From Lepidodermella squamata (lineage: Eukaryota > Animalia > Gastrotricha), in assembly GCA_047495785.1 (NCBI GenBank), contig JBLDXI010000032.1, positions 620,001-684,000 on the forward strand: a stretch of 64,000 nt of DNA. The letters are read 5' to 3'. Under the pieces are notes generated by a model. That model had not been told where the DNA came from. It ran no database searches and saw nothing but the letters and a program-made list of their open reading frames with translations. This document shows, in pieces, positions 43,742 to 59,484 of this stretch; position 1 is the first letter of the stretch, and every line of letters starts with the position of its first letter. The translations under genes were made by a program, and so were the position numbers.

Positions 43742-44495
43742 TTATTTCAAAAGTTCCATTAATTTTTCACGTGGTGGTACTTTGGTTAGGTTGTGCCGAA
43801 TAACTAGCCCGATTGCCGGAGTAGCAGGAACAAGAAAACGTTTTCCACTCCGATACACCTCGCGCAAGACGTAATCAGGATCTGGACGCTCTATCATCTG
43901 GCTCACCAACACTGCACTTGGAACATTCAGCGTCGCTTCGTCGAGCAGTTTCAATATTGTGTTCATCTGCTTATGTTTCACCCTTGCAGAACCAACGGTT
44001 GTGATTGCCTCGACAATTTGATTTTCCAACGTCTCCCAAACGATATCTTCTAACATCTTCTTCCCTGCCTCAGTCAATTTGCCGTCGCGGTCTCTATCCT
44101 CACGTGAATACTTCCAGGCGATTTTCTTGTTTAGATGTGGGAAGCCTCCAAGCACTGACCAAACTGCCATCTTCAAGCCTACAGCATCTAGATCAGCGAA
44201 TAGAACCTGAAATTCAGGAATCCTCCACAGTTGGTCTTGATCGTAAGGCTCAACATTTATCACATCCAGTAACAACGATGTAGCGTTGATGGCCCCAGGG
44301 GTAGTTTTGAAGCTGTTCAAGTTCTTTCGTCCTAATAGAGCGCGGACGCAGATCAGGAGACTTCATCAGCAGACCAAGTGTCGGCAGCGAAGAGAAGCCA
44401 GCTATTCCTACAACACTCCCAACAGCCCATTTGATAGATGGTCGCTGAAAGACTCGCGACACCGATATCCAATATTGTCGCAGTTTCTTAAACAT
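43742..44495 (-). pseudogene. P-loop NTPase copy A, internally deleted
   Basis: It is nearly identical to copy B but lacks the 428 bp corresponding to 51340..51767 (Walker A, the intron and the Walker B region), which causes a frameshift. Confidence 0.9.
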
Positions 44496-45114
44496 AACAG
44501 CTCTACAGGAAGCAGAAATTGGATACAGAGAAATCCATTAATAAGAATGGAAGAAATCGCCTTTTAAACACGATAAAGTAATTGTGCAGTTTCGAGCCAT
44601 TTTGTTTTATTAAGATGTTATATTTTCGTGCAACGTTTCGGCCACGAAATATCTTAGAATTCGAAAATCGAAACGCAGATATTTTGCGTATCGCCTTTCG
44701 AATTAAAAAAAATTCGAAAACTCCGAAAATTCAGGATATTTAACTCAGAAAACTCAGAAGTTCATTACAAATCTGACTCAGACCAGCTCTGATGGGGCTT
44801 CATCAGCTTCTCGTAATTCTGTCTGCACTTCTGAATCTGATGGGCCGCTGGCCGATTCGGAAGCCAGAATTTCGGTCGTATTTGGCCAAGTATTCGGGCG
44901 AGTAGCGTTGCAACGAGTGCTTCGATCATTTACTTAGGGTCGCGGCAGGGGGGTTTTGACGATGATGAATGATGATCGTCCGCCTCTTGGCCAGGTGAAG
45001 CGCTACATGGCAGTGGCCCGGGCGACGACCGGATAATTTTATTCGGCTCTCGAACACAAATAGAACGGGTCAGAGGTCATCCCTTATACCTAGTGGCGGA
45101 TGGGACCTATATAA

Positions 45115-45981
45115 TGGTGCGTCCACAAACTAACTTCGGAGAGGGTGACTTCGGAGACCGAACTTGAAACTTCGGAACACTCAAGCGAAACTTCGGTGAC
45201 GTTATCAGTGGCAATTTCCGCGCGCGCACGGCATGAGTCGTCCGAAGTTTCTATTGTTTGCGGGCCGAAGATTTTAAGTGCGCGCACATGAGTGCGAGCG
45301 CGCTCAAACTAGAGAAGGGGCCGCAGGGTAGACACAAAATTTTTTCAATTTCACTTGAATTCTCAAAATTCCTAAATAATAAGATTTGAAATGCGACGAA
45401 GATAACAAAAAGCTAAATTTCGACACGAAATTCACTATTTTTGAGAATAAATCAGAAACTAAATTGATTTTTTCAACGCGCACTATAAGCTTTTTTTAAG
45501 GGCACCCGATAATTTCTAAATTGAAATTTTTTGTGAAAACAAGGATTTTACTGCGCGCATTTCATATACGTCATTTTCGTCAATAATACGAATTAAAGAT
45601 GCCACAGGAAAAGTTGATTTATGTCGTCGCCCTACCTCGCGCGGTCAAGTGGCCGCGCGTGCGTAACTTCGGACACGCACAAACTTCGGTTCGGAGGCGC
45701 TTCGGAGAGCAGTTTTGGGCCTCTCCGAACCGAAGTTTGTGCGTGTCCGAAGTTACTACGTTGCGTAATCGCTGACCGAAGTTTGATATTTTCGCGCGTC
45801 CTTTGTTCAGTGCGCGCGCGCCGCCCATTGTTCTCACTTCGGGCGCGCAGTCCGAAGTGCGCGCGTTTGTGAACGAAAATCTCAAACTTCGGTCAGCGAT
45901 TACGCAACTTCGGAGAGCGATTACGAAACTTCGGAGGCTAAAACTTCGGACGCGTCTCCGAAGCAGTTTGTGAACGTAACA
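45115..45981. mobile_element. PIF/Harbinger (Tourist-like) non-autonomous element
   Basis: There is a TAA duplication and ~28-bp imperfect TIRs. Empty sites are visible at ~52648 and ~61620. The interior has many ACTTCGGA motifs and a hairpin at 45662..45758. Confidence 0.85.
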
Positions 45982-46254
45982 TAAGTTATCCTAGGCTATT
46001 AGAATTATGTGGAAAAATAATATTCGGAGTTTTCGGCCGATTCCTGCGGTACTTTTGCGGTGCTTTTACGGTATAAATCCCGAAAAACAAAAACTCAGGG
46101 AAACTTAGAGGTGTACACAGAAAACCGACTTTAATTTTTGAAACGAGTCGTCAATACTGATAGCCCGCTTGATTCTCTACAAGGTATCAGCGACTCGAGT
46201 CCCAAAACAGCGCCGCTCGTGCGAAAATCGCGTCTTGAAAACTCCATTCGTCGT

Positions 46255-49200
46255 TCAGATTCGTCGTTCGCCTCGTTAACCTGGCTCTCCTCGTTCCCTT
46301 CGTTTACTTCGTCTTTGTCGTCGATATGGTTGAAACATTCAATTTCCCATGTGTCAACCCATGTGGTTTCGATGAAATTTCGGCCCTCCGAAGCATCAAC
46401 CTCGAATTCGGCACAGAAAATGGCGAAGATTGCACGCCAAATGCGAAAAATCTCGCGTTTCGAGCAAGACGCTTGGAGCACACCAAAGCATTTCAGCGCC
46501 AGTTTACGAGCTTCCTTCTTCACAGGTACCTTGAAAGATCATGCATCAAGTGATTTATGCAAAAGGTGACGAGAGTTCCGGAAGTTGGCAGGGTTTTGCC
46601 GTCTTTGTGAGCGTCAATAAACAGGCGGCTTAGGTTGATCACGTAACTTCGCAGATTTTTCTCACAAAATGTAATCACCACGGCATGAAACTCTGCGAAA
46701 CAGCAATCGATTACCACCACTCTCGGCATTTTCGCCGCCCTGTGAGCTCGTTCCACCGCCGATTTCCAGGTCGTTAAAAAACAGGGAAACATAATTTTTT
46801 ATTTGCTGTCCAATTCAAAATCAATGAGTTCGAAAATATTCCATAGCTTAAAAAATGGGTCCAAAGATCACTCGCAAAACATCAGTAAAATTTAGGCTTG
46901 TTTTGGAGAATGTTCAGAAAATCAAGGTGAACTCGTAAATTAATAAAAGAAATACAGGTAACAAAGGGATATACAAATATGAAGCCCCAATATTTTACCG
47001 GGAATTTTGCGAGATCACCTTGATTTAAAAAAAAAATTGGAGTGAGTGCCTGCATTTTTGGCCTTAGACTTGAATACAAGAGCCACACTCGATTTCAACA
47101 ATGAAAAATCTTTCGGTTTACAAATTTGTCACGTCTTAGATACTTTTAGAAGGTACTTAGAAGGTAGGTCAATAGACAAAAATGCTGGATTTTTACCTTC
47201 AAAAAGAAAGCGATTCTGTCGCCAGTCTGCTCAGCAGAAATCAGCTCACCCACCGGGTAACCCACAGGCTTGTCATCAACCGTTGTAGGCAGAAATGCGT
47301 GTAAAAAAACGCGCTTGCTCGTTTCATAGTCAAGTTTCCATATACCACCTGTCGCTTCCAACGCACAAATGATGTGTCCATGCTTGACTGCTCAAAGAAT
47401 AATTCAATTGACAAGCCGAAGTAAAGAACTAGACCCATCGGATAATCCTAATAGAATCAATATTAAAAGCTGCATATTCACAAGTTAATAGTTACTCACA
47501 ATTGACTGTCGAATGTAAGGTCTTACTCTGGCATTTTGTTCATCCCGCAGTTTAATGAGATCAAAGCGGGGATCAGCATCGGCTCGACCATCTATAAAAC
47601 AGTTCTTGAATTCGTTTCATTTTATTCATAAAAATTAATTTTCAAACCCAAGTTCCATCTTTTTCGACTGAATTTTCTGTAGTGCGGACAGGTCTGGTAC
47701 CTCTGTCGTGGGCATTTGAGCAAACATCTCGCCATGAAGCTTCTTCGCTGTAGTCTTTTTCAATTCTTCGGCCAATTTTTCGCGTTTGTTTCCGGAAATT
47801 TTCTCTACCCGTGGCTCTCCTTCATGATTGAAAACGCCTAAAACGTTCAATGATGATTTAGTTGGAAGAGGAAGTAAGAGAAATAACAATACCAGCAACA
47901 ACTTTCAGCTCGAATTTGAAGGAACCAGTTCCGGTATCGTCCAAATCGCAGCTGAATTCGAAACTTCGGCACTTAAAATATTGGCATTCACCCTTGCCAG
48001 TCGCCATTCGAGTGCCCTCGGTGATGCTACGGCCATCGAAACTGATTGGGCATGTTGTTTCTGGCTTGGAAGCATCGCGTAGTAACTGCGCCCAGCCTTC
48101 CGGAAATTTTCATTCAAGTCGAGGCTTGCCATTTCTCAACGTTCCGTTTCTCTTCTGGACTGGGTTTAATGCGCTTGAGAAAGGCACATTCACGCAGAAA
48201 TGCTCATACTCCACCTGGTTGGTTTTCTCCAGCACTTCGAGATGCGAGCCTCCGCAGCCCTTTTTCCGCATTTTATCCTTGTACCTTTCATACGCGCACT
48301 TCCTTTGATACCATTCATTCGGCTTTTGCTGTTTAGTGCAGACTGAGTTGCTATCTCGCCCTAATTAATACGTAAGTGAAACAAAGGTAATGGGGAATTA
48401 TTTAAGTGACTTACAAGATAAATTCAGCTCCTTCCAGTTGCTCAGTTCAGAAAGTATTTCTTCCTCAGATTTCATATTTTCGCATTATCGAGTTGGAAAC
48501 GAGATGATGAACTCTAAGTTTCAGTTTCAACTTTTTGATGTGAGCAGCGCGCGCGATGCTAAATTCGCGTGCAAACCATCACATTGGTGCCACCTTTCTT
48601 TGCACAGATGGCCATTTTTCATTTTGACAAAACAAATTTTCGATCTTTCAAAAATAATTGTTGTAAGACCTCAAGCACCATTGAGCCTACATCCTATGCC
48701 CATATAATTTCAGATAATGTACTTGACTATTGATGTACTCGTAAGCCACTTAGACACGCCAGATACCCATTTAAACAATTTAGGTTTTAGAAATCCTTCT
48801 TTTATCTCACCTTTAGAGGCAATCAATGAAGAGCAACTTGAGCGTACTGTTCGCTCATAAAATAACGAAAATGTCATTTTTAATTGCTGTTTTATTCTGA
48901 TTATATTCAACGAAATTGGCTGGCTCATATACTGTATACGTACAAATTTTCGCTGTAATTTTATTTTCGCGAAATTTCGCGACGACCTCGGCTCGCGAAT
49001 TCAAGATTCGCGAAAATTTATCCCTCGCGAAAATTAATTGCACGCGAAAAAAAATCCCTCGTGAAAGAAAATCGCTCGCAGAGATTACGTAATTCTAAAC
49101 GATTTGAAAAGCAGTCTTGGGCACCAGGCACCTGCGAGACTAGTTGGTCATATCATGCTCATTTCCTAGCAGCGCGAAAAACTGCTTGAGCTAAAAGTGG

Positions 49201-50566
49201 ATGCCGCTGCGAGGCGCTGCTGATTGGCTGAGACGACTAAGCCAATCAAATCTGGTTTAAATGGTGGTCGATTGTCCATCAAGTGGTTATCAATCGAGCC
49301 GCGCGCGTAATTAGTGCGCCATTGTAGATCGAGTAGTCGATTAAGCGCGCCTTCGCACTTTCCGCTTCTCTACACAGCTATCAATTTCGCAACCAGCCGC
49401 TATTGCTCGCATAACCGGAACGACATGCGCACGAGTTACGAGATTACGGGCCCTCCTTAGATTGCGCAATCAGAGGGTGAATGTGGATCTTTGCGGAAAC
49501 GCAAACTCAAATTATAATTTCTGGACCGCGCGCGCTATTGACAGAAAGATACTGCTGATTGTTTTGGCGGTTTTTATACTCTGATAAAATTCAGAAAATT
49601 CTCTATCGAATAGATATAGGTTTCTCGCGAAAAGAATAATGGGAAAATCTTACGCGCGACTTCAATTTCGTTTTCAGGCGAGAGAGCGCGCTCTCATCCT
49701 GTGCGCAAATTTTGAGGTGCGCGTAAAACTTATTTTCATGAATTTTTTCACGCGAGAACCCTATATCTATTCGATAGCGAATTGTTGGAATTATTTTGCA
49801 GTATGAAAACCGACGCGGTGTTTGGAAGTAATTCTTTGAAATCCGCGCGCGCGGTCTAGAACTTGTTAAAAATCAGGACTAAGAAAAGTGAACTGATGCG
49901 CGCGCGCGAGGAATACAAGTGCGCGCGCGCCAAGTCCTGATTGGCAACCAATCAGCGAGCCGGAATTGAGTGCACGCGCAACGTAATCGCCACGCGCGAG
50001 CTGTAGTTGTTACGCGCGAAATGCACGTAACTTTTACCGAGATCGCCGTATCCTCGCGAATTCAAGATTTTCGCGAAAATTACTGTTTTATTACGCAATT
50101 ATCCAAGGATCGCCCTCGCGAATTTAAAATTTCGCGAAAATAGAAAATGGTCATTTTTGGGCAATTCGCGAATTCAAGATTACCGCGAAAATTAGTACGT
50201 ATACAGTATTCCTTACCATGTACTGGAGTAGGGCAATCGAGTGGCGTATTGGCAGGGTGGGCCGCTGACAAGTGAACCGCCAACTTCCAAAATCCCCGTT
50301 AAAATGGAAGTTGGCGGCCCACCGGCGGCCTCTGGAAGAGTCATGGAAACAAGTATCTTGCGCTGCCAGATGGATACATCGAGAATATCACTTGGCAGAC
50401 ACCATTCCGACAACAAAAGGTGGCCGTTAATGTTTCAAAAACTGGGCCGCCAACTTCTGCTCACTTGTCAACAAGAATTATTAAAATTAATACAAAAATG
50501 TGATTATTGTGGAATATTTACTGATAAGGTGTCACTGATGAAATGTCACTGCTGAAAAGTCTGACC
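46255..50566 (-). mobile_element. Mutator-like element (MULE) with a decayed, spliced transposase, copy 1
   Basis: Fragments L(E/D)ATGG..., VVVIDCCFAEFHAV and TFCINHLMH match the D, D and CxxH motifs of MULE transposases. There is a premature stop in the N-terminal part and no catalytic Glu region. The right terminus GTCACTGCTGAAAAGTCTGACC (50566) is the inverse of the terminus at 62179. Confidence 0.75.
48932..50206. mobile_element. TA-flanked non-autonomous DNA transposon nested in the MULE
   Basis: TA-CTGTATACGTACAAATTTTCGCTGTAAT ... ATTACCGCGAAAATTAGTACGTATACAG-TA, with TCGCGAA subterminal repeats and an internal inverted repeat at ~49570..49810. Confidence 0.85.
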
Positions 50567-50813
50567 ATTAAATAATTTTTTAATTCATCTAATTAATAAA
50601 AAATTCAATTTTCAATTTTCAAAGTTATCATTTTTAATTAAATGAATAAAAGATTAGTTGATATAACGATGTTTATATTCCGGTATTACTATGCTACTAA
50701 AATGAATAAAAAGAAAAGTTTCGAATAATTCTTACGGGTATATTTTTTGTCATTTGTTTTCAAAAAATAATTATTTCCGGCAGCTTTGATTCTAGTTTAT
50801 TCAAGTCTACATA

Positions 50814-51995
50814 TTATTTCAAAAGTTCCATTAATTTTTCACGTGGTGGTACTTTGGTTAGGTTGTGCCGAATAACTAGCCCGATTGCCGGAGTAGCAGG
50901 AACAAGAAAACGTTTTCCACTCCGATACACCTCGCGCAAGACGTAATCAGGATCTGGACGCTCTATCATCTGGCTCACCAACACTGCACTTGGAACATTC
51001 AGCGTCGCTTCGTCGAGCAGTTTCAATATTGTGTTCATCTGCTTATGTTTCACCCTTGCAGAACCAACGGTTGTGATTGCCTCGACAATTTGATTTTCCA
51101 ACGTCTCCCAAACGATATCTTCTAACATCTTCTTCCCTGCCTCAGTCAATTTGCCGTCGCGGTCTCTATCCTCACGTGAATACTTCCAGGCGATTTTCTT
51201 GTTTAGATGTGGGAAGCCTCCAAGCACTGACCAAACTGCCATCTTCAAGCCTACAGCATCTAGATCAGCGAATAGAACCTGAAATTCAGGAATCCTCCAC
51301 ATTTGGTCTTGATCGTAAGGCTCAACATTTATCACATCCTGTCTCCCCGTTTCCAATAGTCCAGGAGGAAGCGTGTTCGGAGGGCCATCCACAATGACGT
51401 GAAGCCCATACTTTTCTGTTAGCAAACGAACGGCACCAGTAAGCTTTGCGTAAGGTTCCTTATCCTCAGGCGACCGTTCGCTAGCACGAATCACAAGAAA
51501 TGGCGATTTTCCAGTCAGGCGCTTGAATAGGTAAATAGCCCACAGAGCGCGATATTCGTCAGCGAACAATGGCACTTTCGTTACAGCACGCAAAGCTTCA
51601 AAAACGATAGTGTCCTGGTCAGTACCTGCAGGAATCTGTATAAAAGAAAAAATGACAACAAATGAGCTACCGCAGTTAAAAATGTCACTTACAACGCATT
51701 CAACTACTCCGCGTTTACAGCTTGTGAACGTGTCTATCATACACGACTTCCCAACACCTACGGCTCCAGTAACAACGATGTAGCGTTGATGGCCCCAGGG
51801 GTAGTTTTGAAGCTGTTCAAGTTCTTTCGTCCTAATAGAGCGCGGACGCAGATCAGGAGACTTCATCAGCAGACCAAGTGTCGGCAGTGAAGAGAAGCCA
51901 GCTATTCCTACAACACTTCCAACAGCCCATTTGATAGATGGTCGCTGAAAGACTCGCGACACCGTTATCCAATATTGTCGCAGTTTCTTAAGCAT
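50814..51995 (-). CDS. P-loop NTPase copy B (intact, ~374 aa after splicing)
   Basis: Walker A IVVTGAVGVGKS, an acidic hhhhD motif HVIVDG and a VLGGFP (GxP) motif are present. The intron is 51692..51636 (57 nt, GTAAGT...ACAG). The N-terminus is basic and followed by a hydrophobic segment. Confidence 0.85.
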   Translation of the reverse strand: MLKKLRQYWITVSRVFQRPSIKWAVGSVVGIAGFSSLPTLGLLMKSPDLRPRSIRTKELEQLQNYPWGHQRYIVVTGAVGVGKSCMIDTFTSCKRGVVECVVSDIFNCGSSFVVIFSFIQIPAGTDQDTIVFEALRAVTKVPLFADEYRALWAIYLFKRLTGKSPFLVIRASERSPEDKEPYAKLTGAVRLLTEKYGLHVIVDGPPNTLPPGLLETGRQDVINVEPYDQDQMWRIPEFQVLFADLDAVGLKMAVWSVLGGFPHLNKKIAWKYSREDRDRDGKLTEAGKKMLEDIVWETLENQIVEAITTVGSARVKHKQMNTILKLLDEATLNVPSAVLVSQMIERPDPDYVLREVYRSGKRFLVPATPAIGLVIRHNLTKVPPREKLMELLK

Positions 51996-52199
51996 AACAG
52001 CTCTACAGGAAGCAGAAATTAGAGAAATTCTACAGAGAAATCCATTAATAAGAATGGAAGAAATCGCCCTTTAAAACACGATATTTTAGCAAAATAATTG
52101 TGCAGTTTCGAGCCATTTTGCTTTATTAAGATGTAAGATGTTATATTTTCGTGCAACGTTTCGGCCACGAAATGGCCATCGTCAGGCAATATCTTAGAA

Positions 52200-52818
52200 A
52201 TAAAATAATTGAAATAATTCGAAAACTCCGAAAAATCAGGATATTTAACTCAGAAAACTCAGAACATTAATATTATTAACTCTGAAACTCTGAAGTTCCT
52301 TACATTAATCTGACTCAGACCAGCTCTGATGGGGCTTCATCATTTTCTCGTAATTCTGTCTCCACTTCTGAATCTGATGGGCCGCTGGCCGCTTTCGGAA
52401 GCCAGAATTTCGTTCGTAGTTGGCCAAGTATTCGGGTGAGTAGCGTTGCAACGAGGGCTTCGATCATTTACTTAGGGTTGCGGCAGGGGGGTTATGACGA
52501 TGATGAATGATGATCTTCCGCCTCTTGGCCAGGTGACGCGCTAAATGGCAGTGGCTCGGGCGATGACCGGATAATTTTATTCGGCTCTCGAACACAAATA
52601 GAACGGGTCAGAGGTCATCCCTTACCTAGTGGCGTATGGGACCTATATAAGTTGTCCTAGGCTATTAGAATTATGTTGAAAAATAATATTCGGAGTTTGC
52701 GGAGTAAAATTAAAATGAATTTTTTGAGTTATCTGAGTTAAAATTTTTAATTATTTCTGAGTTTCGAAAAATAATTGGAAAAATATTCTGAGTTTTTTTA
52801 CTTCGCGGAGTTTTCTGA
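52200..52818. repeat. Degenerate inverted-repeat element upstream of each NTPase copy
   Basis: ACTCAGAA arrays lie on the left and TTCTGAGT arrays on the right. Homologous blocks occur at ~44700..46030 and ~60390..62175. Confidence 0.55.
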
Positions 52819-53010
52819 CGGCTCTACGACAAATCAGAAAGGACAACTGTGAATTCGACAAATCAGAACAGACAAATCAGAAAACGACAACTCACAATAA
52901 TTTTCGCGAATTTTTCTGAGCGACAAATCCGAATTATCTGCGACAACTCAGAATGCGACAATTTAGAATTACTCCCCTGTATTTTTCTCAGCGACAAATC
53001 AGAACGCGAC

Positions 53011-53668
53011 GGTGTGGCGACATTTCCGGTCGCGACTTTAGCGTCCCTAAACTTTGCGTCCCGACCTTTCCGCCCAAAAACATTTCAGCCCAAATTTGTC
53101 AACGACAAATACGCGCGCGACTATTGAGCCGATAAGCACGACATTTGAGCTATCGCCAACGACACAAGAGCCCCAGGTAAATATTTATTTATTGATTTAT
53201 CAGGTTCAACTTGAGAAATGCGACATAGGCGCTTAGGGCAAAGGAACAAATTTATGCCACAAGTTCTATTGGTAATTTAATAGCAAGAGGACGTTTGCTA
53301 ACATAGAGATCGAAGTTCGATCTCATTGCTCGCTAATAACGAAAGTAGTACAACCGAATTGCGAATTAAGAATGGAATTGCTATAATTTCGAAGTGATTA
53401 GTTAAGCATAGTCGAGCAGAGAAGGAGATGTGGCAGTTTGCAAGGTTAGGCCGCGGGCGTTAGGGTCGTGAGGTGAAAAGTCGCATCCTACTCTCAGATT
53501 TAAATGCGTCATCAACGCCCCAAGTGCGTCAAGGAATTCGGAAAATTATTTTCAATTCTTGGCTTAAACGTCGTGGGCGGATTAGTCGCTGGCTGTAATG
53601 TCTTGGGCGGAAAAGTCGGGACGCAAAGTTCACCAGCGGAATTGCCGGGACGGAAATGTCACACGACC
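53011..53668. mobile_element. Nested MULE-like MITE 1
   Basis: An 8-bp duplication AACGCGAC flanks it (53003..53010 and 53669..53676). The long imperfect TIRs start with GG. Confidence 0.85.
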
Positions 53669-53943
53669 AACGCGACAATAATTTAGAAGAATGAATTTAC
53701 TTCATATTAGAGACATGCGAATCTCATGCTGAATAAATTTGATGGTCCTTGAATAGCTCGTCAATGCTTTAAGCTTCAAGGTGATGGATTCAACTCATCT
53801 AAATTGTCGCGTTCTGATTTGTCGCAGATAATTCGGATTTGTCGCTCAGAAAAAATCGCGAACATTATTCTGAGTTGTCGTTTTCGCAAATGACGCGACT
53901 AATGCGAACAAAAGTTCGGACTTGCCGGTACACGTTTCTGACT

Positions 53944-54792
53944 GGTGTGGCGACAAATCCGTGCGCGACTTTTGCGTCCGTAAACTTTGCGCCTTGACAA
54001 TTACGTCCAAAGACATTATAGCCCAAAAATGTGGGCGACCTATCAGCCCGCGACAAAATAAGTACAAATTTGGTTAATTTAGGCGGCAATTTAGCTAGCG
54101 AAACTTCCAACGGCGACAGAAGCGCTTTGTGTAAATGATTTATTTACGACATTATAGCTAGTGACTTTATCGCTGGCGACATAACAGCAAATAGATACCG
54201 AATTCCAACCAGAAGTGGAAACAGGTAGAATTTTAGCAACCAAACTTGACCAATGACAAGACTTGGATTTTCTTGGTGAGACCGGGCCCGCTTGACGTGG
54301 CTCCACTGAAATGATCGTTTTTACCGGCCCGAATGGGGCCCTTTCCTCGCAGCCATTCCTCGGATGAGACCGGTTGGAGTGACATAGGCCACTAAATTTA
54401 GTGAGAACCAATTTCCCGCATTTATCTCAAAACCAGACCCATACCGGTGTAACCTGTTTTCTACCTCTGATTTAGTTTAGCATTAAGAATAAAGCCTTGA
54501 TAGCCAAGTTCGATCATCACGTGACATATGGCAAGGGCGTTAATGTCGTGTGCGTACAGGTCGCGAGCGATCATGTCGCCATTAATAAATAATAATAATA
54601 CATTTTCACGCGTCATATCCGCCCATTTTTTGGGCAGATATTTTGACGTTCATATATTTAAAATTATCAAGATTAAGGCTATAACGCCACTGGCGTTCAT
54701 GTCGCTAGCGGTCTTGTCGTGGGACGTATTTGTCGGGGCGCACAGTTAACCGGCGGATTAGTCGGGGGTCGGGGCGTATTTGTCACCCATCC
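53944..54792. mobile_element. Nested MULE-like MITE 2
   Basis: An 8-bp duplication TTCTGACT flanks it (53936..53943 and 54793..54800). It starts GGTGTGGCGACA like MITE 1. Confidence 0.85.
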
Positions 54793-55014
54793 TTCTGACT
54801 TTCCGAAGTTAATTAAAATATTTTAAAAATTCATTTTACTGAGTTGTACGATTCTGAAATGACGCGTAGAGTACTGAAATGTCGATAAAATAAAAATGAT
54901 TTTGATTTTCTCAAATGTCGCGTTCTGAAATGTCGATTTCTGTAATGTCTCTACTGAATTGGCGTAGATCCTTATTTCCGGCAGCTTTGATTCTAGTTTA
55001 TTCTAGTCTAAATA

Positions 55015-56387
55015 TTATTTCAAAAGTTCCATTAATTTTTCACGTGGTGGTACTTTGGTTAGGTTGTGCCGAATAACTAGCCCGATTGCCGGAGTAGCAG
55101 GAACAAGAAAACGTTTCCCACTCCGATACACCTCGCGCAAGACGTTATCAGGATCTGGACGCTTCAAATTTTTTGGCAGGGACACAGACGCTACTTTCAA
55201 CGTGCTTTCATCCAGCAGTTTCAGAATTTCCCTTGTCTGAGGATACATTCGCTTGGAATTGTCCACGGTTGTGATTGCCTCGACAATTTGATTTTCCAAC
55301 GTCTCCCAAACGATATCTTCTAACATCTGCTTCCCCGCCTCAGTCAATTTGCCGTCGCGGTCTCTATCCTCACGTGAATACTTCCAGGCGATTTTCTTGT
55401 TTAGATGTGGGAAGCCTCCAAGCACTGACCAAACTGCCATCTTCAAGCCTACAGCATCTAGATCAGCGAATAGAACCTGAAATTCAGGAATCCTCCACAG
55501 TTGGTCTTGATCGTAAGGCTCAACATTTATCACATCCTGTCTCCCCGTTTCCAATAGTCCAGGAGGAAGCGTGTTCGGAGGGCCATCCACAATGACGTGA
55601 AGCCCATACTTTTCTGTTAGCAAACGAACGGCACCAGTAAGCTTTGCGTAAGGTTCCTTATCCTCAGGCGACCGTTCGCTAGCACGAATCACAAGAAATG
55701 GCGATTTTCCAGTCAGGCGCTTGAATAGGTAAATAGCCCACAGAGCGCGATATTCGTCAGCGAACAATGGCACTTTCGTTACAGCACGCAAAGCTTTAAA
55801 AACGATAGTGTCCTGGTCAGTACCCGCAGGAATCTGTATAAAAGAAAAAATGACAACAAATGAGCTACCGCAGCAAAAATGTTACTTACAACGCATTTAA
55901 CTACTCCGCGTTTACAGCTTGTGAACGTGTCTATCAAACACGACTTCCCAACACCTATGGCTCCAGTAACAACGATGTAGCGTTGATGGCCCCATGGGTA
56001 GTTTTGAAGCTGTTCAAGTTCTTTCGTCCTAATAGAGCGCGGACGCAGATCAGGAGACTTCATCAGCAGACCAAGTGTCGGCAGTGAAGAGAAGCCAGCT
56101 ATTCCTACAACACTCCCAACAGCCCATTTGATAGATGGTCGCTGAAAGACTCGCGACACCGGTATCCAATAATGTCGCAGTTTCTTAAACATAACAGCTC
56201 TATAGGAAGCAGAAATTATATGAGAATTAGATACAGAGAAATCTATTAATAACCTTATCAGCAGACCAAGTGTCGGCAGCGAAGAGAAGCCAGCTATTCC
56301 TACAACACTTCCAACAGCCCATTTGATAGATGGTCGCTGAAAGACTCGCGACACCGGTATCCAATATTGTCGCAGTTTCTTAAGCAT
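55015..56387 (-). CDS. P-loop NTPase copy C, with an in-frame duplicated N-terminus and a divergent C-terminal block
   Basis: The intron 55889..55834 (56 nt) restores the frame. Walker A is GAIGVGKS. Alternative ATGs lie at 56387 and 56192. Confidence 0.85.
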
Positions 56388-56489
56388 AACAGCACTATAG
56401 AAAGCAGAAATTAGATGAGAATTAGATACAGAGAAATCCATTAATAAGAATAGAAGACATCGTTATTGTGTTTCAAGTTGTACGTTAAT

Positions 56490-59484
56490 CTTTAACCCGC
56501 GCGCTGATTGGTCAATTTATTGTTGCAATTCAATTTATTCGTCTGGTCAAATTCGGCCTCGAATCGAAAAATCAAATCCGAGAAATCGAGTCCATTGGAA
56601 AAGCTGTGGATGGTCGAAAGGACGTGGCTATGCTGGGAATCGATCACGCTGTAATCGAATCGGTTACCTGGCGCGGATCGACGTTCAACTCGAATGACAT
56701 CGTCCTGGCTAACGGCTGCGAGCTTATTTTTTTTAAAATTGAACACTTTGTATATAACCGCAGCGACGGTGAAATTTTAGTTCGACTACTGGAAGCGAAT
56801 TGCAATTATTTTATGGGAACTAATTCGTATCAAATTGTGTCTTATGGTGGCAAATCCATCTTAGCTCCTCTGTCTCAAATTAGCTTCCCTTGGCCGGTAC
56901 TGCGTAAGGCAGACCGCTTATTGTTATTAGCAACCCCAAGGGTGTTGTTTTTAATCGAAACCGAATAATTTAATAAATTATTTTTTTAGGAGTCGATTGT
57001 TAATTTCATTTTTTTTGTCATGGATCGTTATACGAAGAAGCAACAGAAGCAACACGCAGCGCTTTTGCCGCCTGAATTGCGCGATTTCAACTTCCCCACG
57101 TGTTTTCCACGACCTGACGAGCTTTCTGAACTGGGCCGCGCTTTCGCTGATGGCCACGACGTTTCAGTGAAGGCTCAAAAATCGTTTCGCAACGAAATCA
57201 CGAATTACCTATGGTAAGTACTATTTTTTCATCATTTTTTTTATCATGGAAATCAATTTTTAATTTTTAATTTTATTTTCAATTTATTTAAAATGTAAAA
57301 ATAGTTTTCTTCGATAGAAATGTTTCAGAAATTTTTAGAAAATTGATTATAAAATCGTAGCAATTGTATGGAAATTATTATATATTTTGTTTATTTTCTG
57401 AATTTTTTATTAAAATGTAAAATGTGGGGATTAATCATGGATCATCTGTAAAAAATTGAAGCTTTTGATTTAGAAATTTTGATTGAAAGATTTGAGAAAT
57501 TTTTCGAAATAAAATTTTGGTAATCACTAATTAATTATTATGATAAATTTTAAAATTGTGTAATAATTTTGAATTTTTGAATTTTGTTTTATATGCATTT
57601 TTTATTACAGGAAATTTGTTCCTCGAAATGTTGGCAACCCAGTGCAACGGCGAATTATGTTCGCCAATTTCTTCGACACCCTGCTCCTCAACTACCCAGC
57701 AATCCCCGGGATTCCGGTGCTTACGGACGGTCGCTCGAATGCAAGGGTGAGTTCGCCTACAACTTGGATAGTGAATTTATAGTCATTTTTCTATTTTTCC
57801 AGCCCCCGGTATTCGACAAGATTACCTCTGCCATACGCATGCGGGAAAATTGCGGGTTCAATACTCGCCACCAGCGCCCTACTCTGACTCCCTTGCAGCC
57901 TCCGCCCACCCTATTTCTCCAGTCAACACCTACATCTCAAACACCGGCTATTTCGACACCAGAACAGCCAGCTTTTTCAATCCAGCGAGCACCCTCGGGT
58001 GATGAAAATCGCGCTGATTCTCTCAGCGGCAACGTGAGCGGAATCTTTCCGACAGCCGCCGAAATGCCGGAAATGGGTGAATTCTCGGAATTTCATCCGC
58101 AAGCGCCTTATCAACACGTGCCGGCGGACCTCGTGCAGTCTAACAGTTCTTCCACGCCCACCTACGCCGTTCTCACCCCGATCAACCCTCAGACCTACCA
58201 GCAGCCAACTTTTCAAATGGCCCCCGTAGACTACGCTGTGCGTCGCCTGGCTCCAATTTCAATGCCAACGCCTGGCTTGGAGAAGAATATGCCAGCTGTG
58301 GATAATAACTTGCCCGAGTCGCTCAACACAGCTACGGAGATGATTCTAGCCGAGATTCCTGGCAGCAGCGACGGCCAGAAGGCAAATACCAGCAGTACCC
58401 CCGTAATCAAAATTGGCTGCCGTAAACGTGGAGGAGCGTCGAAACAAGATACGGCTGAAGCGGCTCCGCGAGCAACTCGGCAGCGTAAGCAGTAGCTGTT
58501 TTTGCCTCATGTTCGTCTCATATTATCCAAATAGTACACAACATACATCCGATAGTTCAAAATAATTTCGCTGATTTCTAAACTCTCGTTGCTTCCAATT
58601 TATTAGTTGTTAGCTCGAATCGTTTTTGCAAAATAATCTTCCGAACACTCCTCTTCAAACTATATTCAACGAAATTCAACGCCTTAATTTATCCAGCGAC
58701 AATAAACATTGTTATTCCGTTTCATGCTTTATGTTTTATGGCGTCTAGTGTAAATATTTTTCTGTTTTGAGCGGTGTATTTTCCATGTGGTCGCGTCTCC
58801 TCCATAATATTATTGTATCATACTGTATTTATGCTGTTATTATATAAGCCTTTTTGTTAGGGAAAAATTCAAATTGTAAATATTCAATTTTTTAATCGAG
58901 AATAATAATATCTCTGTATACTACTACATGTGTCTTCTTCTTCCCGTTGTGACTTCTCCTCATTCTTTCTCATTCTTCCTTTGATTTCGTGTATCATCAC
59001 CTATATTTTGTATGAAACGTGCGCTCATCGAAGGATTTCAAATTATGAAGCAAAAATGTAAAAAATCTCTCTTGTATTTTAATGCATTTTTATTAAACAA
59101 AACAACATATTAATTAAACCTAGAAACTCGCTGGAAAATTAATTAAGAAAAAATTCAAATACCACGTTTAACCTGAAATAAAACACGCTTCGTATAATCA
59201 ATGGTCTTTTTGTTGAGTTTATTCCTCATGTGCGCAAGTAGAGGAATTTTCCCGAGATTCATTTCAGAATAATATCAATAATAACGTTTGATTGAGGGTT
59301 TACGCGTTAATGTCTGCCTAGTCGGGATATTAACGCGTAAATTTAGGTCAATATTGAAGCGTAAAAGATATTTAAGCGTAAAATTAGGCAATATTTACGC
59401 GTCATTTTTATTGAGAGGTTTTACCCGTAAACGCGCTCAAATTTTACCCGTAAATAGAGATTAAGCGTAAATTGCCTGTGAGTG
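56490..59484 (+). mobile_element. 5'-truncated CACTA/EnSpm(CMC)-like transposon: transposase C-terminus, accessory gene and right terminus
   Basis: An ORF is open from the junction to 56968 (VTWRGSTFNSNDIVL...FFKIEHF...SYQIV...FPWP), which resembles the C-terminus of animal EnSpm/Mirage-type transposases as I recall them. TTTACGCGTAA subterminal repeats at 59295..59470 end in ...TGTGAGTG (CACTC terminus). Confidence 0.6.
57020..58495 (+). CDS. Spliced accessory gene of the CMC-like element (340 aa; helical N-domain, Pro/Ser/Thr-rich tail, basic C-terminus)
   Basis: Exons 57020..57213, 57611..57746 and 57803..58495 splice in frame with canonical sites. An AATAAA lies at ~58701. Confidence 0.7.

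Follow-up and report, generated by a model that had tools for sequence, protein, structure and literature searches.

The minus strand of positions 43742-56387 in a 64,000-nucleotide stretch of the gastrotrich Lepidodermella squamata genome (contig JBLDXI010000032.1, positions 620,001 to 684,000; hereafter the window, numbered from its first letter) carries three related copies, A, B and C, of a P-loop NTPase gene, and the question raised by this locus is how such a family came to reside in an animal and what its products may do there. A preliminary description of the sequence had seen a three-copy family, recently amplified and perhaps horizontally acquired, that might encode a conflict or immunity protein. 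Here we argue, at a probability of about 0.55 for the reading as a whole, that the copies belong to an endogenous, transcribed family whose products would act as membrane-anchored switches of the STAND (signal transduction ATPases with numerous domains)/PF01637 type in an accessory role. We are confident of the identity part of this reading, namely a real spliced gene family with an anchor, a STAND/PF01637-type fold and an array driven by gene conversion; the switch mechanism and the accessory role are proposed tentatively.

Gene structure, splicing and transcription

Two intact genes (B and C) and one pseudogene (A) are found at the locus, all on the minus strand. Copy B (50814-51995) appears as a single open frame of 393 aa, because its 57-nt intron is in frame and is read through by naive translation. 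This intron (51636-51692, phase 0, GTAAGT..ACAG) was found by aligning the three copies. It separates exon 1 (51693-51995, 303 nt), which ends in GAATGCGTT followed by GTAAGT, from exon 2 (50814-51635), which includes the winged-helix domain and ends with the stop codon TAA. The 19 intron-encoded residues are absent from homologues, and removal of the intron yields a product of 374 aa with the joint ...GVVECV/IPAGTDQD..., as in homologues (P0004 reads GVITVKVPAKQDED). Copy B was searched and folded as the unspliced frame, and the spliced models were used for alignments, trees and ratios of nonsynonymous to synonymous substitution rates (dN/dS).

Exon 1 of copy B encodes the hydrophobic anchor (aa 23-44, 51864-51929) and the Walker A motif GAVGVGKS (aa 77-84, 51744-51767). 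Exon 2 encodes the strands FLVIRASER (51474-51500) and HVIVDGPPN (51375-51401; HVIVD at aa 199-203), assigned below to Walker B and sensor 1, as well as the GGFP lid motif (51207-51227; VLGGFPH at aa 257-263) and a variable cassette of type 1 (VGSARVKHKQ...RPDPDY, 50943-51068, aa 310-351 of the unspliced frame). Copy C (55015-56192) appears as two open reading frames (ORFs) because its unspliced 56-nt intron (55834-55889) breaks the frame; once spliced, exon 1 (55890-56192) and the intact exon 2 (55015-55833, stop TAA) encode 373 aa, with a variable cassette of type 2 (VDNSKRMYPQ...RPDPDN, 55144-55266).

The preliminary description had credited three near-identical genes with Walker A, an hhhhD motif and GGxP; three copies do exist, B being full and C intact when spliced, but copy A (43742-44495, ATG at 44495) is a pseudogene that keeps GGFP and has neither Walker A nor the presumed Walker B and sensor-1 (hhhhD) strands. 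A deletion with its junction at ~44265-44267 has removed 425 bp, equivalent to B 51340-51764, so that everything from Walker A through the DGPPN strand is gone. The deletion shifts the frame (...YIVVTGCDKC-stop), and the C-terminal 192 codons are still open.

The same intron recurs throughout the genome: in each of the seven intact copies that were modelled, a phase-0 GT..AG intron of 55-64 nt lies at this site, after VVEC(V/R/E/Q). Given that every copy has kept it, retroposition is ruled out as the way in which the copies arose.

Two public sequencing runs contain this DNA: run X1, which is taken as RNA by guess only, and run X2, which behaves as DNA. In X2, genes and spacers are covered alike, throughout. 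In X1, both gene bodies are covered, the depth is zero in every bin of 52373-54736 and only a trace is found in the remaining spacer bins; X1 thus avoids the spacers although these are multi-copy repeats. Moreover, an X1 contig joins 51635, the first base of B exon 2, to 55890, the last base of C exon 1, with CT..AC ends. Since B and C do not differ in exon 2 at the junction, this contig is best read as the exon-exon joint of a family transcript, which indicates that the intron is removed in vivo and that at least one copy is transcribed.

These observations also bear on whether the locus is an assembly artefact or a contaminant, for which the history of the probable source assembly gives some ground, as it was made from DNA amplified by multiple displacement amplification (MDA) and 370 non-metazoan contigs were removed (PMC11660948). 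We regard this as scarcely credible. The copies can be told apart (B and C are 94% identical, with different cassettes and different spacers), the DNA run covers genes and spacers throughout, and a short spliceosomal intron is accompanied by a spliced contig. Furthermore, window genes include those for a CUB protein, a class-C G-protein-coupled receptor, an ankyrin protein, a phosphatase of the protein phosphatase 1 type and a mitochondrial carrier; with such animal genes on the same contig, the window is animal DNA and not a contaminant. Its GC content is ~42%.

Three features next to the coding sequences should be mentioned. Copy C has, at its 5' end, an in-frame tandem duplication of two 195-nt units (56057-56251 and 56252-56446, minus strand), and the upstream unit, with an ORF start ATG at 56441, could add a second anchor module; a start there would give two consecutive anchor modules and flip the predicted topology. 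The ~650 bp upstream of A and B (44500-45114 and 52000-52650) are common to both, at 87-89% identity, and have relatives among the dispersed repeats of other contigs, from which the promoter region may thus derive. Just past copy C, a plus-strand open frame (57584-58495) encodes 303 aa in which Pro, Ser, Thr and Gln abound, and matches no Pfam family.

Fold and predicted membrane anchor of the products

The AlphaFold2 model of copy B, built on the family alignment, has a mean predicted local distance difference test (pLDDT) of 88.6 and a predicted template modelling score of 0.84, and pLDDT falls below 50 only at residues 101-116, inside the intron-encoded stretch. It shows a five-strand core, followed by helices at 229-271 and by helices and a beta-hairpin at 285-366. 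The model was compared with 48,161 solved chains by a structure search independent of Foldseek. The highest scores were obtained for the PF01637 proteins PAB2304 (PDB 2qen, Z 14.2) and SSO1545 (PDB 2fna, Z 13.4), the plant NLR WRR4A (Z 13.2), the wheat resistosome (Z 12.4), CED-4 (Z 11.6) and NAIP/NLRC4 (Z 11.3); these six matches span residues ~16-387, that is, the whole three-part module. TnsC (Z 11.3, residues 50-351) and Cdc6/ORC (Z 9.8-10.7) followed, whereas classical AAA structures gave Z <10 and aligned to the core only. Foldseek and the ESM Atlas agree with this fold class. The STAND-like layout of the preliminary description is thereby borne out: residues 47-381 align to the nucleotide-binding, helical and winged-helix modules of PF01637, NLRs, CED-4 and NLRC4 at Z 11-14.

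In an alignment of 58 family sequences, the Walker A motif GxxGxGKS is invariant, and G77, G80, G82, K83, E173, D203, R218, G259, G260 and P262 are invariant or at least 90% conserved; R218 is a candidate arginine finger. S205 (VIVDGSPN) is, like D203, at least 90% conserved. The strand order and the alignments to the AAA_22 and ATPase_2 profiles point to FLVIRASER as the Walker B strand and to HVIVD as the sensor-1 strand (beta-4), so that the 'hhhhD' motif HVIVD is probably not Walker B. The beta-3 strand (copy B, FLVIRASER; P0004, IVVLEASER) follows the pattern hhhh-x-x-S-E-R, in which E173 sits and is the only residue conserved at 90% or more.

At the level of sequence profiles, the family is poorly captured. 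Copy B has only sub-threshold matches to P-loop families in Pfam (AAA_22, AAA_16 and ATPase_2); it scores 15.4 bits against PF01637, below the gathering cut-off of 33.2 bits, and the ten members inspected in detail reach at most 27.5 bits. When matches at E up to 1 were counted over 58 members, 76 Pfam families were touched, with sub-threshold matches to AAA_16 in 54 members, AAA_22 in 51, ATPase_2/PF01637 in 44 (best 3.7e-8), AAA_14 in 32 and nSTAND3 in 26; NB-ARC was touched by 13. No curated STAND profile was significant, the best values among the 58 members being 1.3e-4 for nSTAND3, 4.5e-4 for nSTAND6 and 2.5e-3 for NB-ARC, and copy B had none. The classical AAA profile PF00004 was touched by six members, at E 0.033 or worse, which we count as no membership of that family. 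A profile search of PDB sequences returned matches at the P-loop level only (E >=0.012).

The likeness to tuzins and Crinkler-associated NTPases suggested in the preliminary description did not emerge. No such family is found among the 25 most-matched of the 76 Pfam families, a count in which tuzin itself was not compared directly, and the Crinkler cluster of the Atlas scored 0.81, below the level of a lead.

Neither sensor repeats nor an effector domain were found in the protein, which stops ~10 residues past the winged helix and has only an anchor region of ~45 residues N-terminal to the ATPase. In copy B, this region starts with MLKKLRQYWITVSRVFQRPSIKW, which is acid-free and basic, as noted at the outset, and continues with a hydrophobic stretch of 22 residues. 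Hydrophobicity and charge were counted over 69 full-length members. These have a short neutral or acidic piece, then a Gly/Ala-rich hydrophobic segment of 17-20 residues (mean 17-residue Kyte-Doolittle score 1.8), then a positive flank and the P-loop; the charge is ~0 to +1 on the N-terminal flank and ~+2.3 on the C-terminal flank. A PRxGPGRA motif follows the anchor in most members, the B subclade excepted. A membrane anchor is thus well supported, and by the positive-inside rule it would be a signal-anchor that leaves the ATPase domain facing the cytosol in most members. Such an arrangement is typical of signal-anchored proteins of the outer mitochondrial membrane or of the endoplasmic reticulum. 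As a side observation, a relative with 52% identity on a genomic contig (Logan SRR23086389, 1795 nt), with a 52-nt intron at the same site, has a far more hydrophobic N-terminal anchor, LFAALLLAFLVVFLPAIIL.

The basic N-terminus of copy B is private to one subclade; in most members, what precedes the anchor is neutral or acidic. An extra acid-free basic extension (22 aa in copy B), predicted to form a helix, is found in the B subclade and in P0001, together with an R-x-F (R-V-F) motif immediately before a moderately hydrophobic, GxxxG-containing anchor; the paralogues on contigs C7 and C15 and P0002 are without this extension. The extension looks like a mitochondrial presequence and may redirect the protein to mitochondria, and the target membrane may differ between paralogues.

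These same features would be expected of an inner-membrane ATPase of mitochondria of the Yme2 type, in which a presequence and a stop-transfer anchor place the ATPase in the intermembrane space, where it would serve housekeeping protein biogenesis. Yeast Yme2 is likewise a single-pass protein with an AAA+-type domain after its membrane segment, and it forms large complexes (PMC9284673); in addition, 13 of the 58 members touch the Pfam family RNA12. We consider this reading unlikely, if worth keeping in mind. The best E among these 13 members is 4e-4, and the match inspected in detail (P0012, E 0.012) covers the P-loop only (profile positions 1-51 of 429). There is no RNA recognition motif (RRM), no PF10443 in the genome and no RNA12 cluster in the Atlas searches. 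The N-terminus is acidic or neutral in most members, those on C7 and C15 included. Nor would a housekeeping factor of mitochondria be expected to come in multiple copies with pseudogenes, at a dN/dS of 0.3-0.9 and with a patchy distribution.

Copy number, concerted evolution and age of the family

The family is larger than the three copies first described. A six-frame search of the genome (121.2 Mb, 151 contigs) with copy B and a second search with the family profile gave the same loci: 13 in total, seven of them intact. Nine form an array of ~55 kb on contig C32 (663-718 kb), all on the minus strand, and four are dispersed, one each on contigs C21, C24, C7 and C15, all intact. A weak match of 44 residues on contig C3 (E 5e-5) was seen in the copy-B search alone. 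A search of the genome with PF01637 did not find a second related array.

Three of the nine array loci are intact (copy B, copy C and a copy at 686 kb) and six are broken, as expected from the fast turnover suggested initially. Besides the deletion in copy A, there is an exon-1 frameshift at 717 kb, two rearranged and partial loci at 703 kb and 707 kb, a fragment at 694 kb and, at 691 kb (C32:691178-692355), a locus with a single TGA within the GGxP region. This last locus is otherwise intact, the TGA replacing the Ser codon in ...AVWSVLGGFP, and the stop may mean that the gene died very recently, or it may be a sequencing error in DNA that had been amplified. A further variation was observed in the paralogues: the one on C15 (C15:1508401-1509681) has a threefold tandem repeat of 11 residues (KDYS-x-FFKTE-x) between core strands 2 and 3, of which the C7 paralogue has one unit.

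The near-identity of the copies had been taken as a sign of recent amplification, which is confounded by gene conversion. Pairwise synonymous divergence (dS) ranges from 0.03 (B versus the 686-kb copy) to more than 1.5 (B versus C15). In sliding windows, B and C are 100% identical over ~150 codons and only 47-69% identical in the 41-codon cassette, of which only two types were seen and which, in the winged-helix domain, falls on the helix-turn-helix core. In contrast, the cassette of copy C is 95-98% identical to that of the C7 copy, third codon positions included, while elsewhere the two copies share 55-65% identity. Over the last ~35 codons, all paralogues agree at 93-100%, whichever codon position is considered, and homology between array members ends ~50-400 bp from the coding sequence. 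The array thus evolves by birth-and-death and conversion, including the exchange of winged-helix cassettes between chromosomes. The data point to gene conversion, that is, concerted evolution, as the source of much of the near-identity, which consequently does not date the duplications. This is a clear case of concerted evolution in which cassette exchange between chromosomes makes an old array look newly amplified.

Such a mode of evolution, together with the NOD-type (nucleotide-binding oligomerization domain) fold common to CED-4, NLRs and resistosomes, may recall an immune or cell-death switch, in which ligand-triggered oligomers would bundle the anchor helices into a membrane-damaging pore and the cassette would diversify specificity. 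The anchors are rich in small-xxx-small motifs, and the Atlas points to many-membered clusters in Mucoromycota and haptophytes. We nevertheless judge it rather improbable, as the protein has no sensor domain, dN/dS stays under 1 throughout and the cassettes seen are of two types only; in addition, the conserved juxtamembrane PRxGPGRA suggests a fixed partner and not a variable target.

The tract itself, described at the outset as transposon-rich, is rich in dispersed repeats, of which its mutually unrelated spacers are mosaics. The A-B spacer (45200-50650) contains a ~785-bp repeat (45200-45985) with more than 15 copies on many contigs at 73-86% identity, and a ~2.7-kb repeat (46248-48930) that is also present, at 89-96% identity, on C15, on C10 and at two further places in the array (C32:682.9 kb and 705.5 kb). 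A third element of this spacer, of ~1.28 kb (48929-50212), has inverted ends of ~45 bp and occurs in the genome in 10 copies or more, which match at 83-97%. The B-C spacer (52100-54950) also consists of dispersed repeats, among them a ~660-bp element with ~40-bp inverted ends (53011-53671; at least five copies at 83-86%) that is enclosed by 88-bp inverted repeats (52880-52967 and 53798-53885). The elements with inverted ends are non-autonomous. No sign was found that the gene travels as transposon cargo, and we reject this reading: among the dispersed copies, shared flanking sequence ends within ~70 nt, and a common set of inverted ends was not observed.

To whom, then, is the family related? 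An exhaustive HMMER search gave 382 cluster representatives at E <=1e-3 and 193 at E <=1e-10, nearly all of them unnamed environmental eukaryotic sequences. Of 30 proteins looked up, four had named sources: two from the aphelid Amoeboaphelidium, one from the chytrid Obelidium mucronatum and one from the chrysophyte Chromulina nebulosa. Clusters of the Atlas add Haptophyta and Mucoromycota, with Porifera as an unverified lead. No named animal protein was found among the few matches of the word-indexed searches made with the whole protein, with profile A1 and with residues 150-393. In this respect, the family is indeed atypical of animals.

In the tree, all copies of this genome form one clade with P0001 and P0002 (100/100) on a long stem, and the contigs of the sister group are eukaryotic, compact and poor in introns. 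Both P0001 and P0002 branch within the paralogue clade, after the split of the C7/C15 pair (100/99), and the gene for P0002, on its genomic contig, is interrupted at the same site by a GT..AG intron of 52 nt. The family was therefore present in the animal lineage before at least two fairly distant species diverged, and it has duplicated there.

These results speak to the idea that the gene was recently taken up from a fungus or protist and is now amplifying. The named relatives among aphelids, a chytrid and a chrysophyte, the want of a named animal protein among the matches and the compact, intron-poor contigs of the sister clade would all fit such an origin. It is very improbable in our estimation, since the two closest foreign proteins nest within the own clade and one of them has the same intron site, while the spliceosomal intron is common to the seven intact copies, including pairs with dS >1, and all own copies sit in one clade on a long stem. 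Recent transfer is thus not supported, and the family appears to be an old resident. The occurrence in Holomycota, and the unverified lead in Porifera, fit old opisthokont ancestry with losses; an ancestral presence in opisthokonts with many losses would account for the data equally well as a very old transfer. It should be noted that a patchy distribution alone is a poor ground for calling horizontal transfer.

Possible mechanism and comparison with known systems

STAND and ORC/Cdc6-type ATPases change conformation or self-assemble on nucleotide exchange. By analogy, the product of ~375 aa, made of one Gly/Ala-rich anchor and a bare module of P-loop, GGxP lid and winged helix, might be a nucleotide switch tethered to a membrane and work in the same way, by a change of conformation or by self-assembly. 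The turnover of copies with its pseudogenes, the patchy distribution and a moderate constraint (dN/dS 0.25-0.35 in old pairs, 0.65-0.88 in the youngest pairs, and below 1 everywhere) would fit an accessory role in stress or conflict better than a housekeeping one.

Several points weigh against our reading. The presumed Walker B strand is atypical, FLVIRASE of copy B having an Arg where Asp or Glu is usual, so that hydrolysis may be slow or absent. Topology and target membrane are deduced from sequence features only. The lack of an effector domain and a dN/dS below 1 make a conflict role circumstantial. As for transcription, the RNA status of run X1 is a guess, and the spliced contig differs from B and C by a few letters, so the transcript may derive from another copy or strain. 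A self-assembly prediction for three copies of P0001 residues 60-390 returned a score of 0.00, which counts neither for nor against.

A bolder extension is that the family represents an undescribed, eukaryote-wide 'anchor-only' STAND class in which the membrane helix does the work of an effector: nucleotide-driven assembly would bring the Gly/Ala-rich helices together and make the membrane of an organelle or of the cell permeable, and in this animal paralogues would diversify by cassette swaps and by changes of the N-terminal targeting extension. We offer it as speculation with a small chance of being right. If the switch reading holds, this would be the smallest STAND-type switch seen in an animal, a nucleotide-binding module alone tied to a membrane, and would offer an uncomplicated setting in which to study the action of a bare NOD module there. 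The family comprises several hundred unnamed eukaryotic proteins that are captured by no curated profile.

Compared with known systems, the archaeal PF01637 proteins come closest in structure: 2qen and 2fna were the top two of all chains compared, with 273-281 residues aligned over 47-377. They are of similar size (~350 aa) and have the same three-part build, with template modelling (TM) scores of 0.57-0.64 in the Atlas, and the sub-threshold profile matches fall on the P-loop and on the 'GS...GGxP' part (profile 130-224). However, identity is only 14-16%, the Walker B acid is shifted, and the anchor and PRxGPGRA motif of the eukaryotic family lie outside the aligned range.

A second comparison is with fungal Orc1-like AAA ATPases (PF24913, WHD_AAA_fung), with a fold match of TM 0.62 (residues 1-381) and a score of 0.96 for features in the Atlas. 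These are eukaryotic proteins that combine AAA_16 with a winged helix and are longer (555-573 aa); no PF24913 match was found among the 58 family members. Yme2 (RNA12, PF10443) is more remote, since the gastrotrich family has no RRM and its likeness to Yme2 is limited to the P-loop; a search of this genome with PF10443 returned nothing, and Yme2 was not seen as a multi-copy, decaying family.

Finally, the family shares with the STAND proteins CED-4, Apaf-1, plant NLRs and the NACHT protein NLRC4 the nucleotide-binding/helical/winged-helix module and a GxP in the lid, at Z 11.3-13.2 over residues ~16-387. Unlike them, it carries neither sensor repeats nor an effector such as CARD, TIR or CC (coiled coil), reaches no Pfam STAND threshold, and would be held at the membrane by an N-terminal helix.

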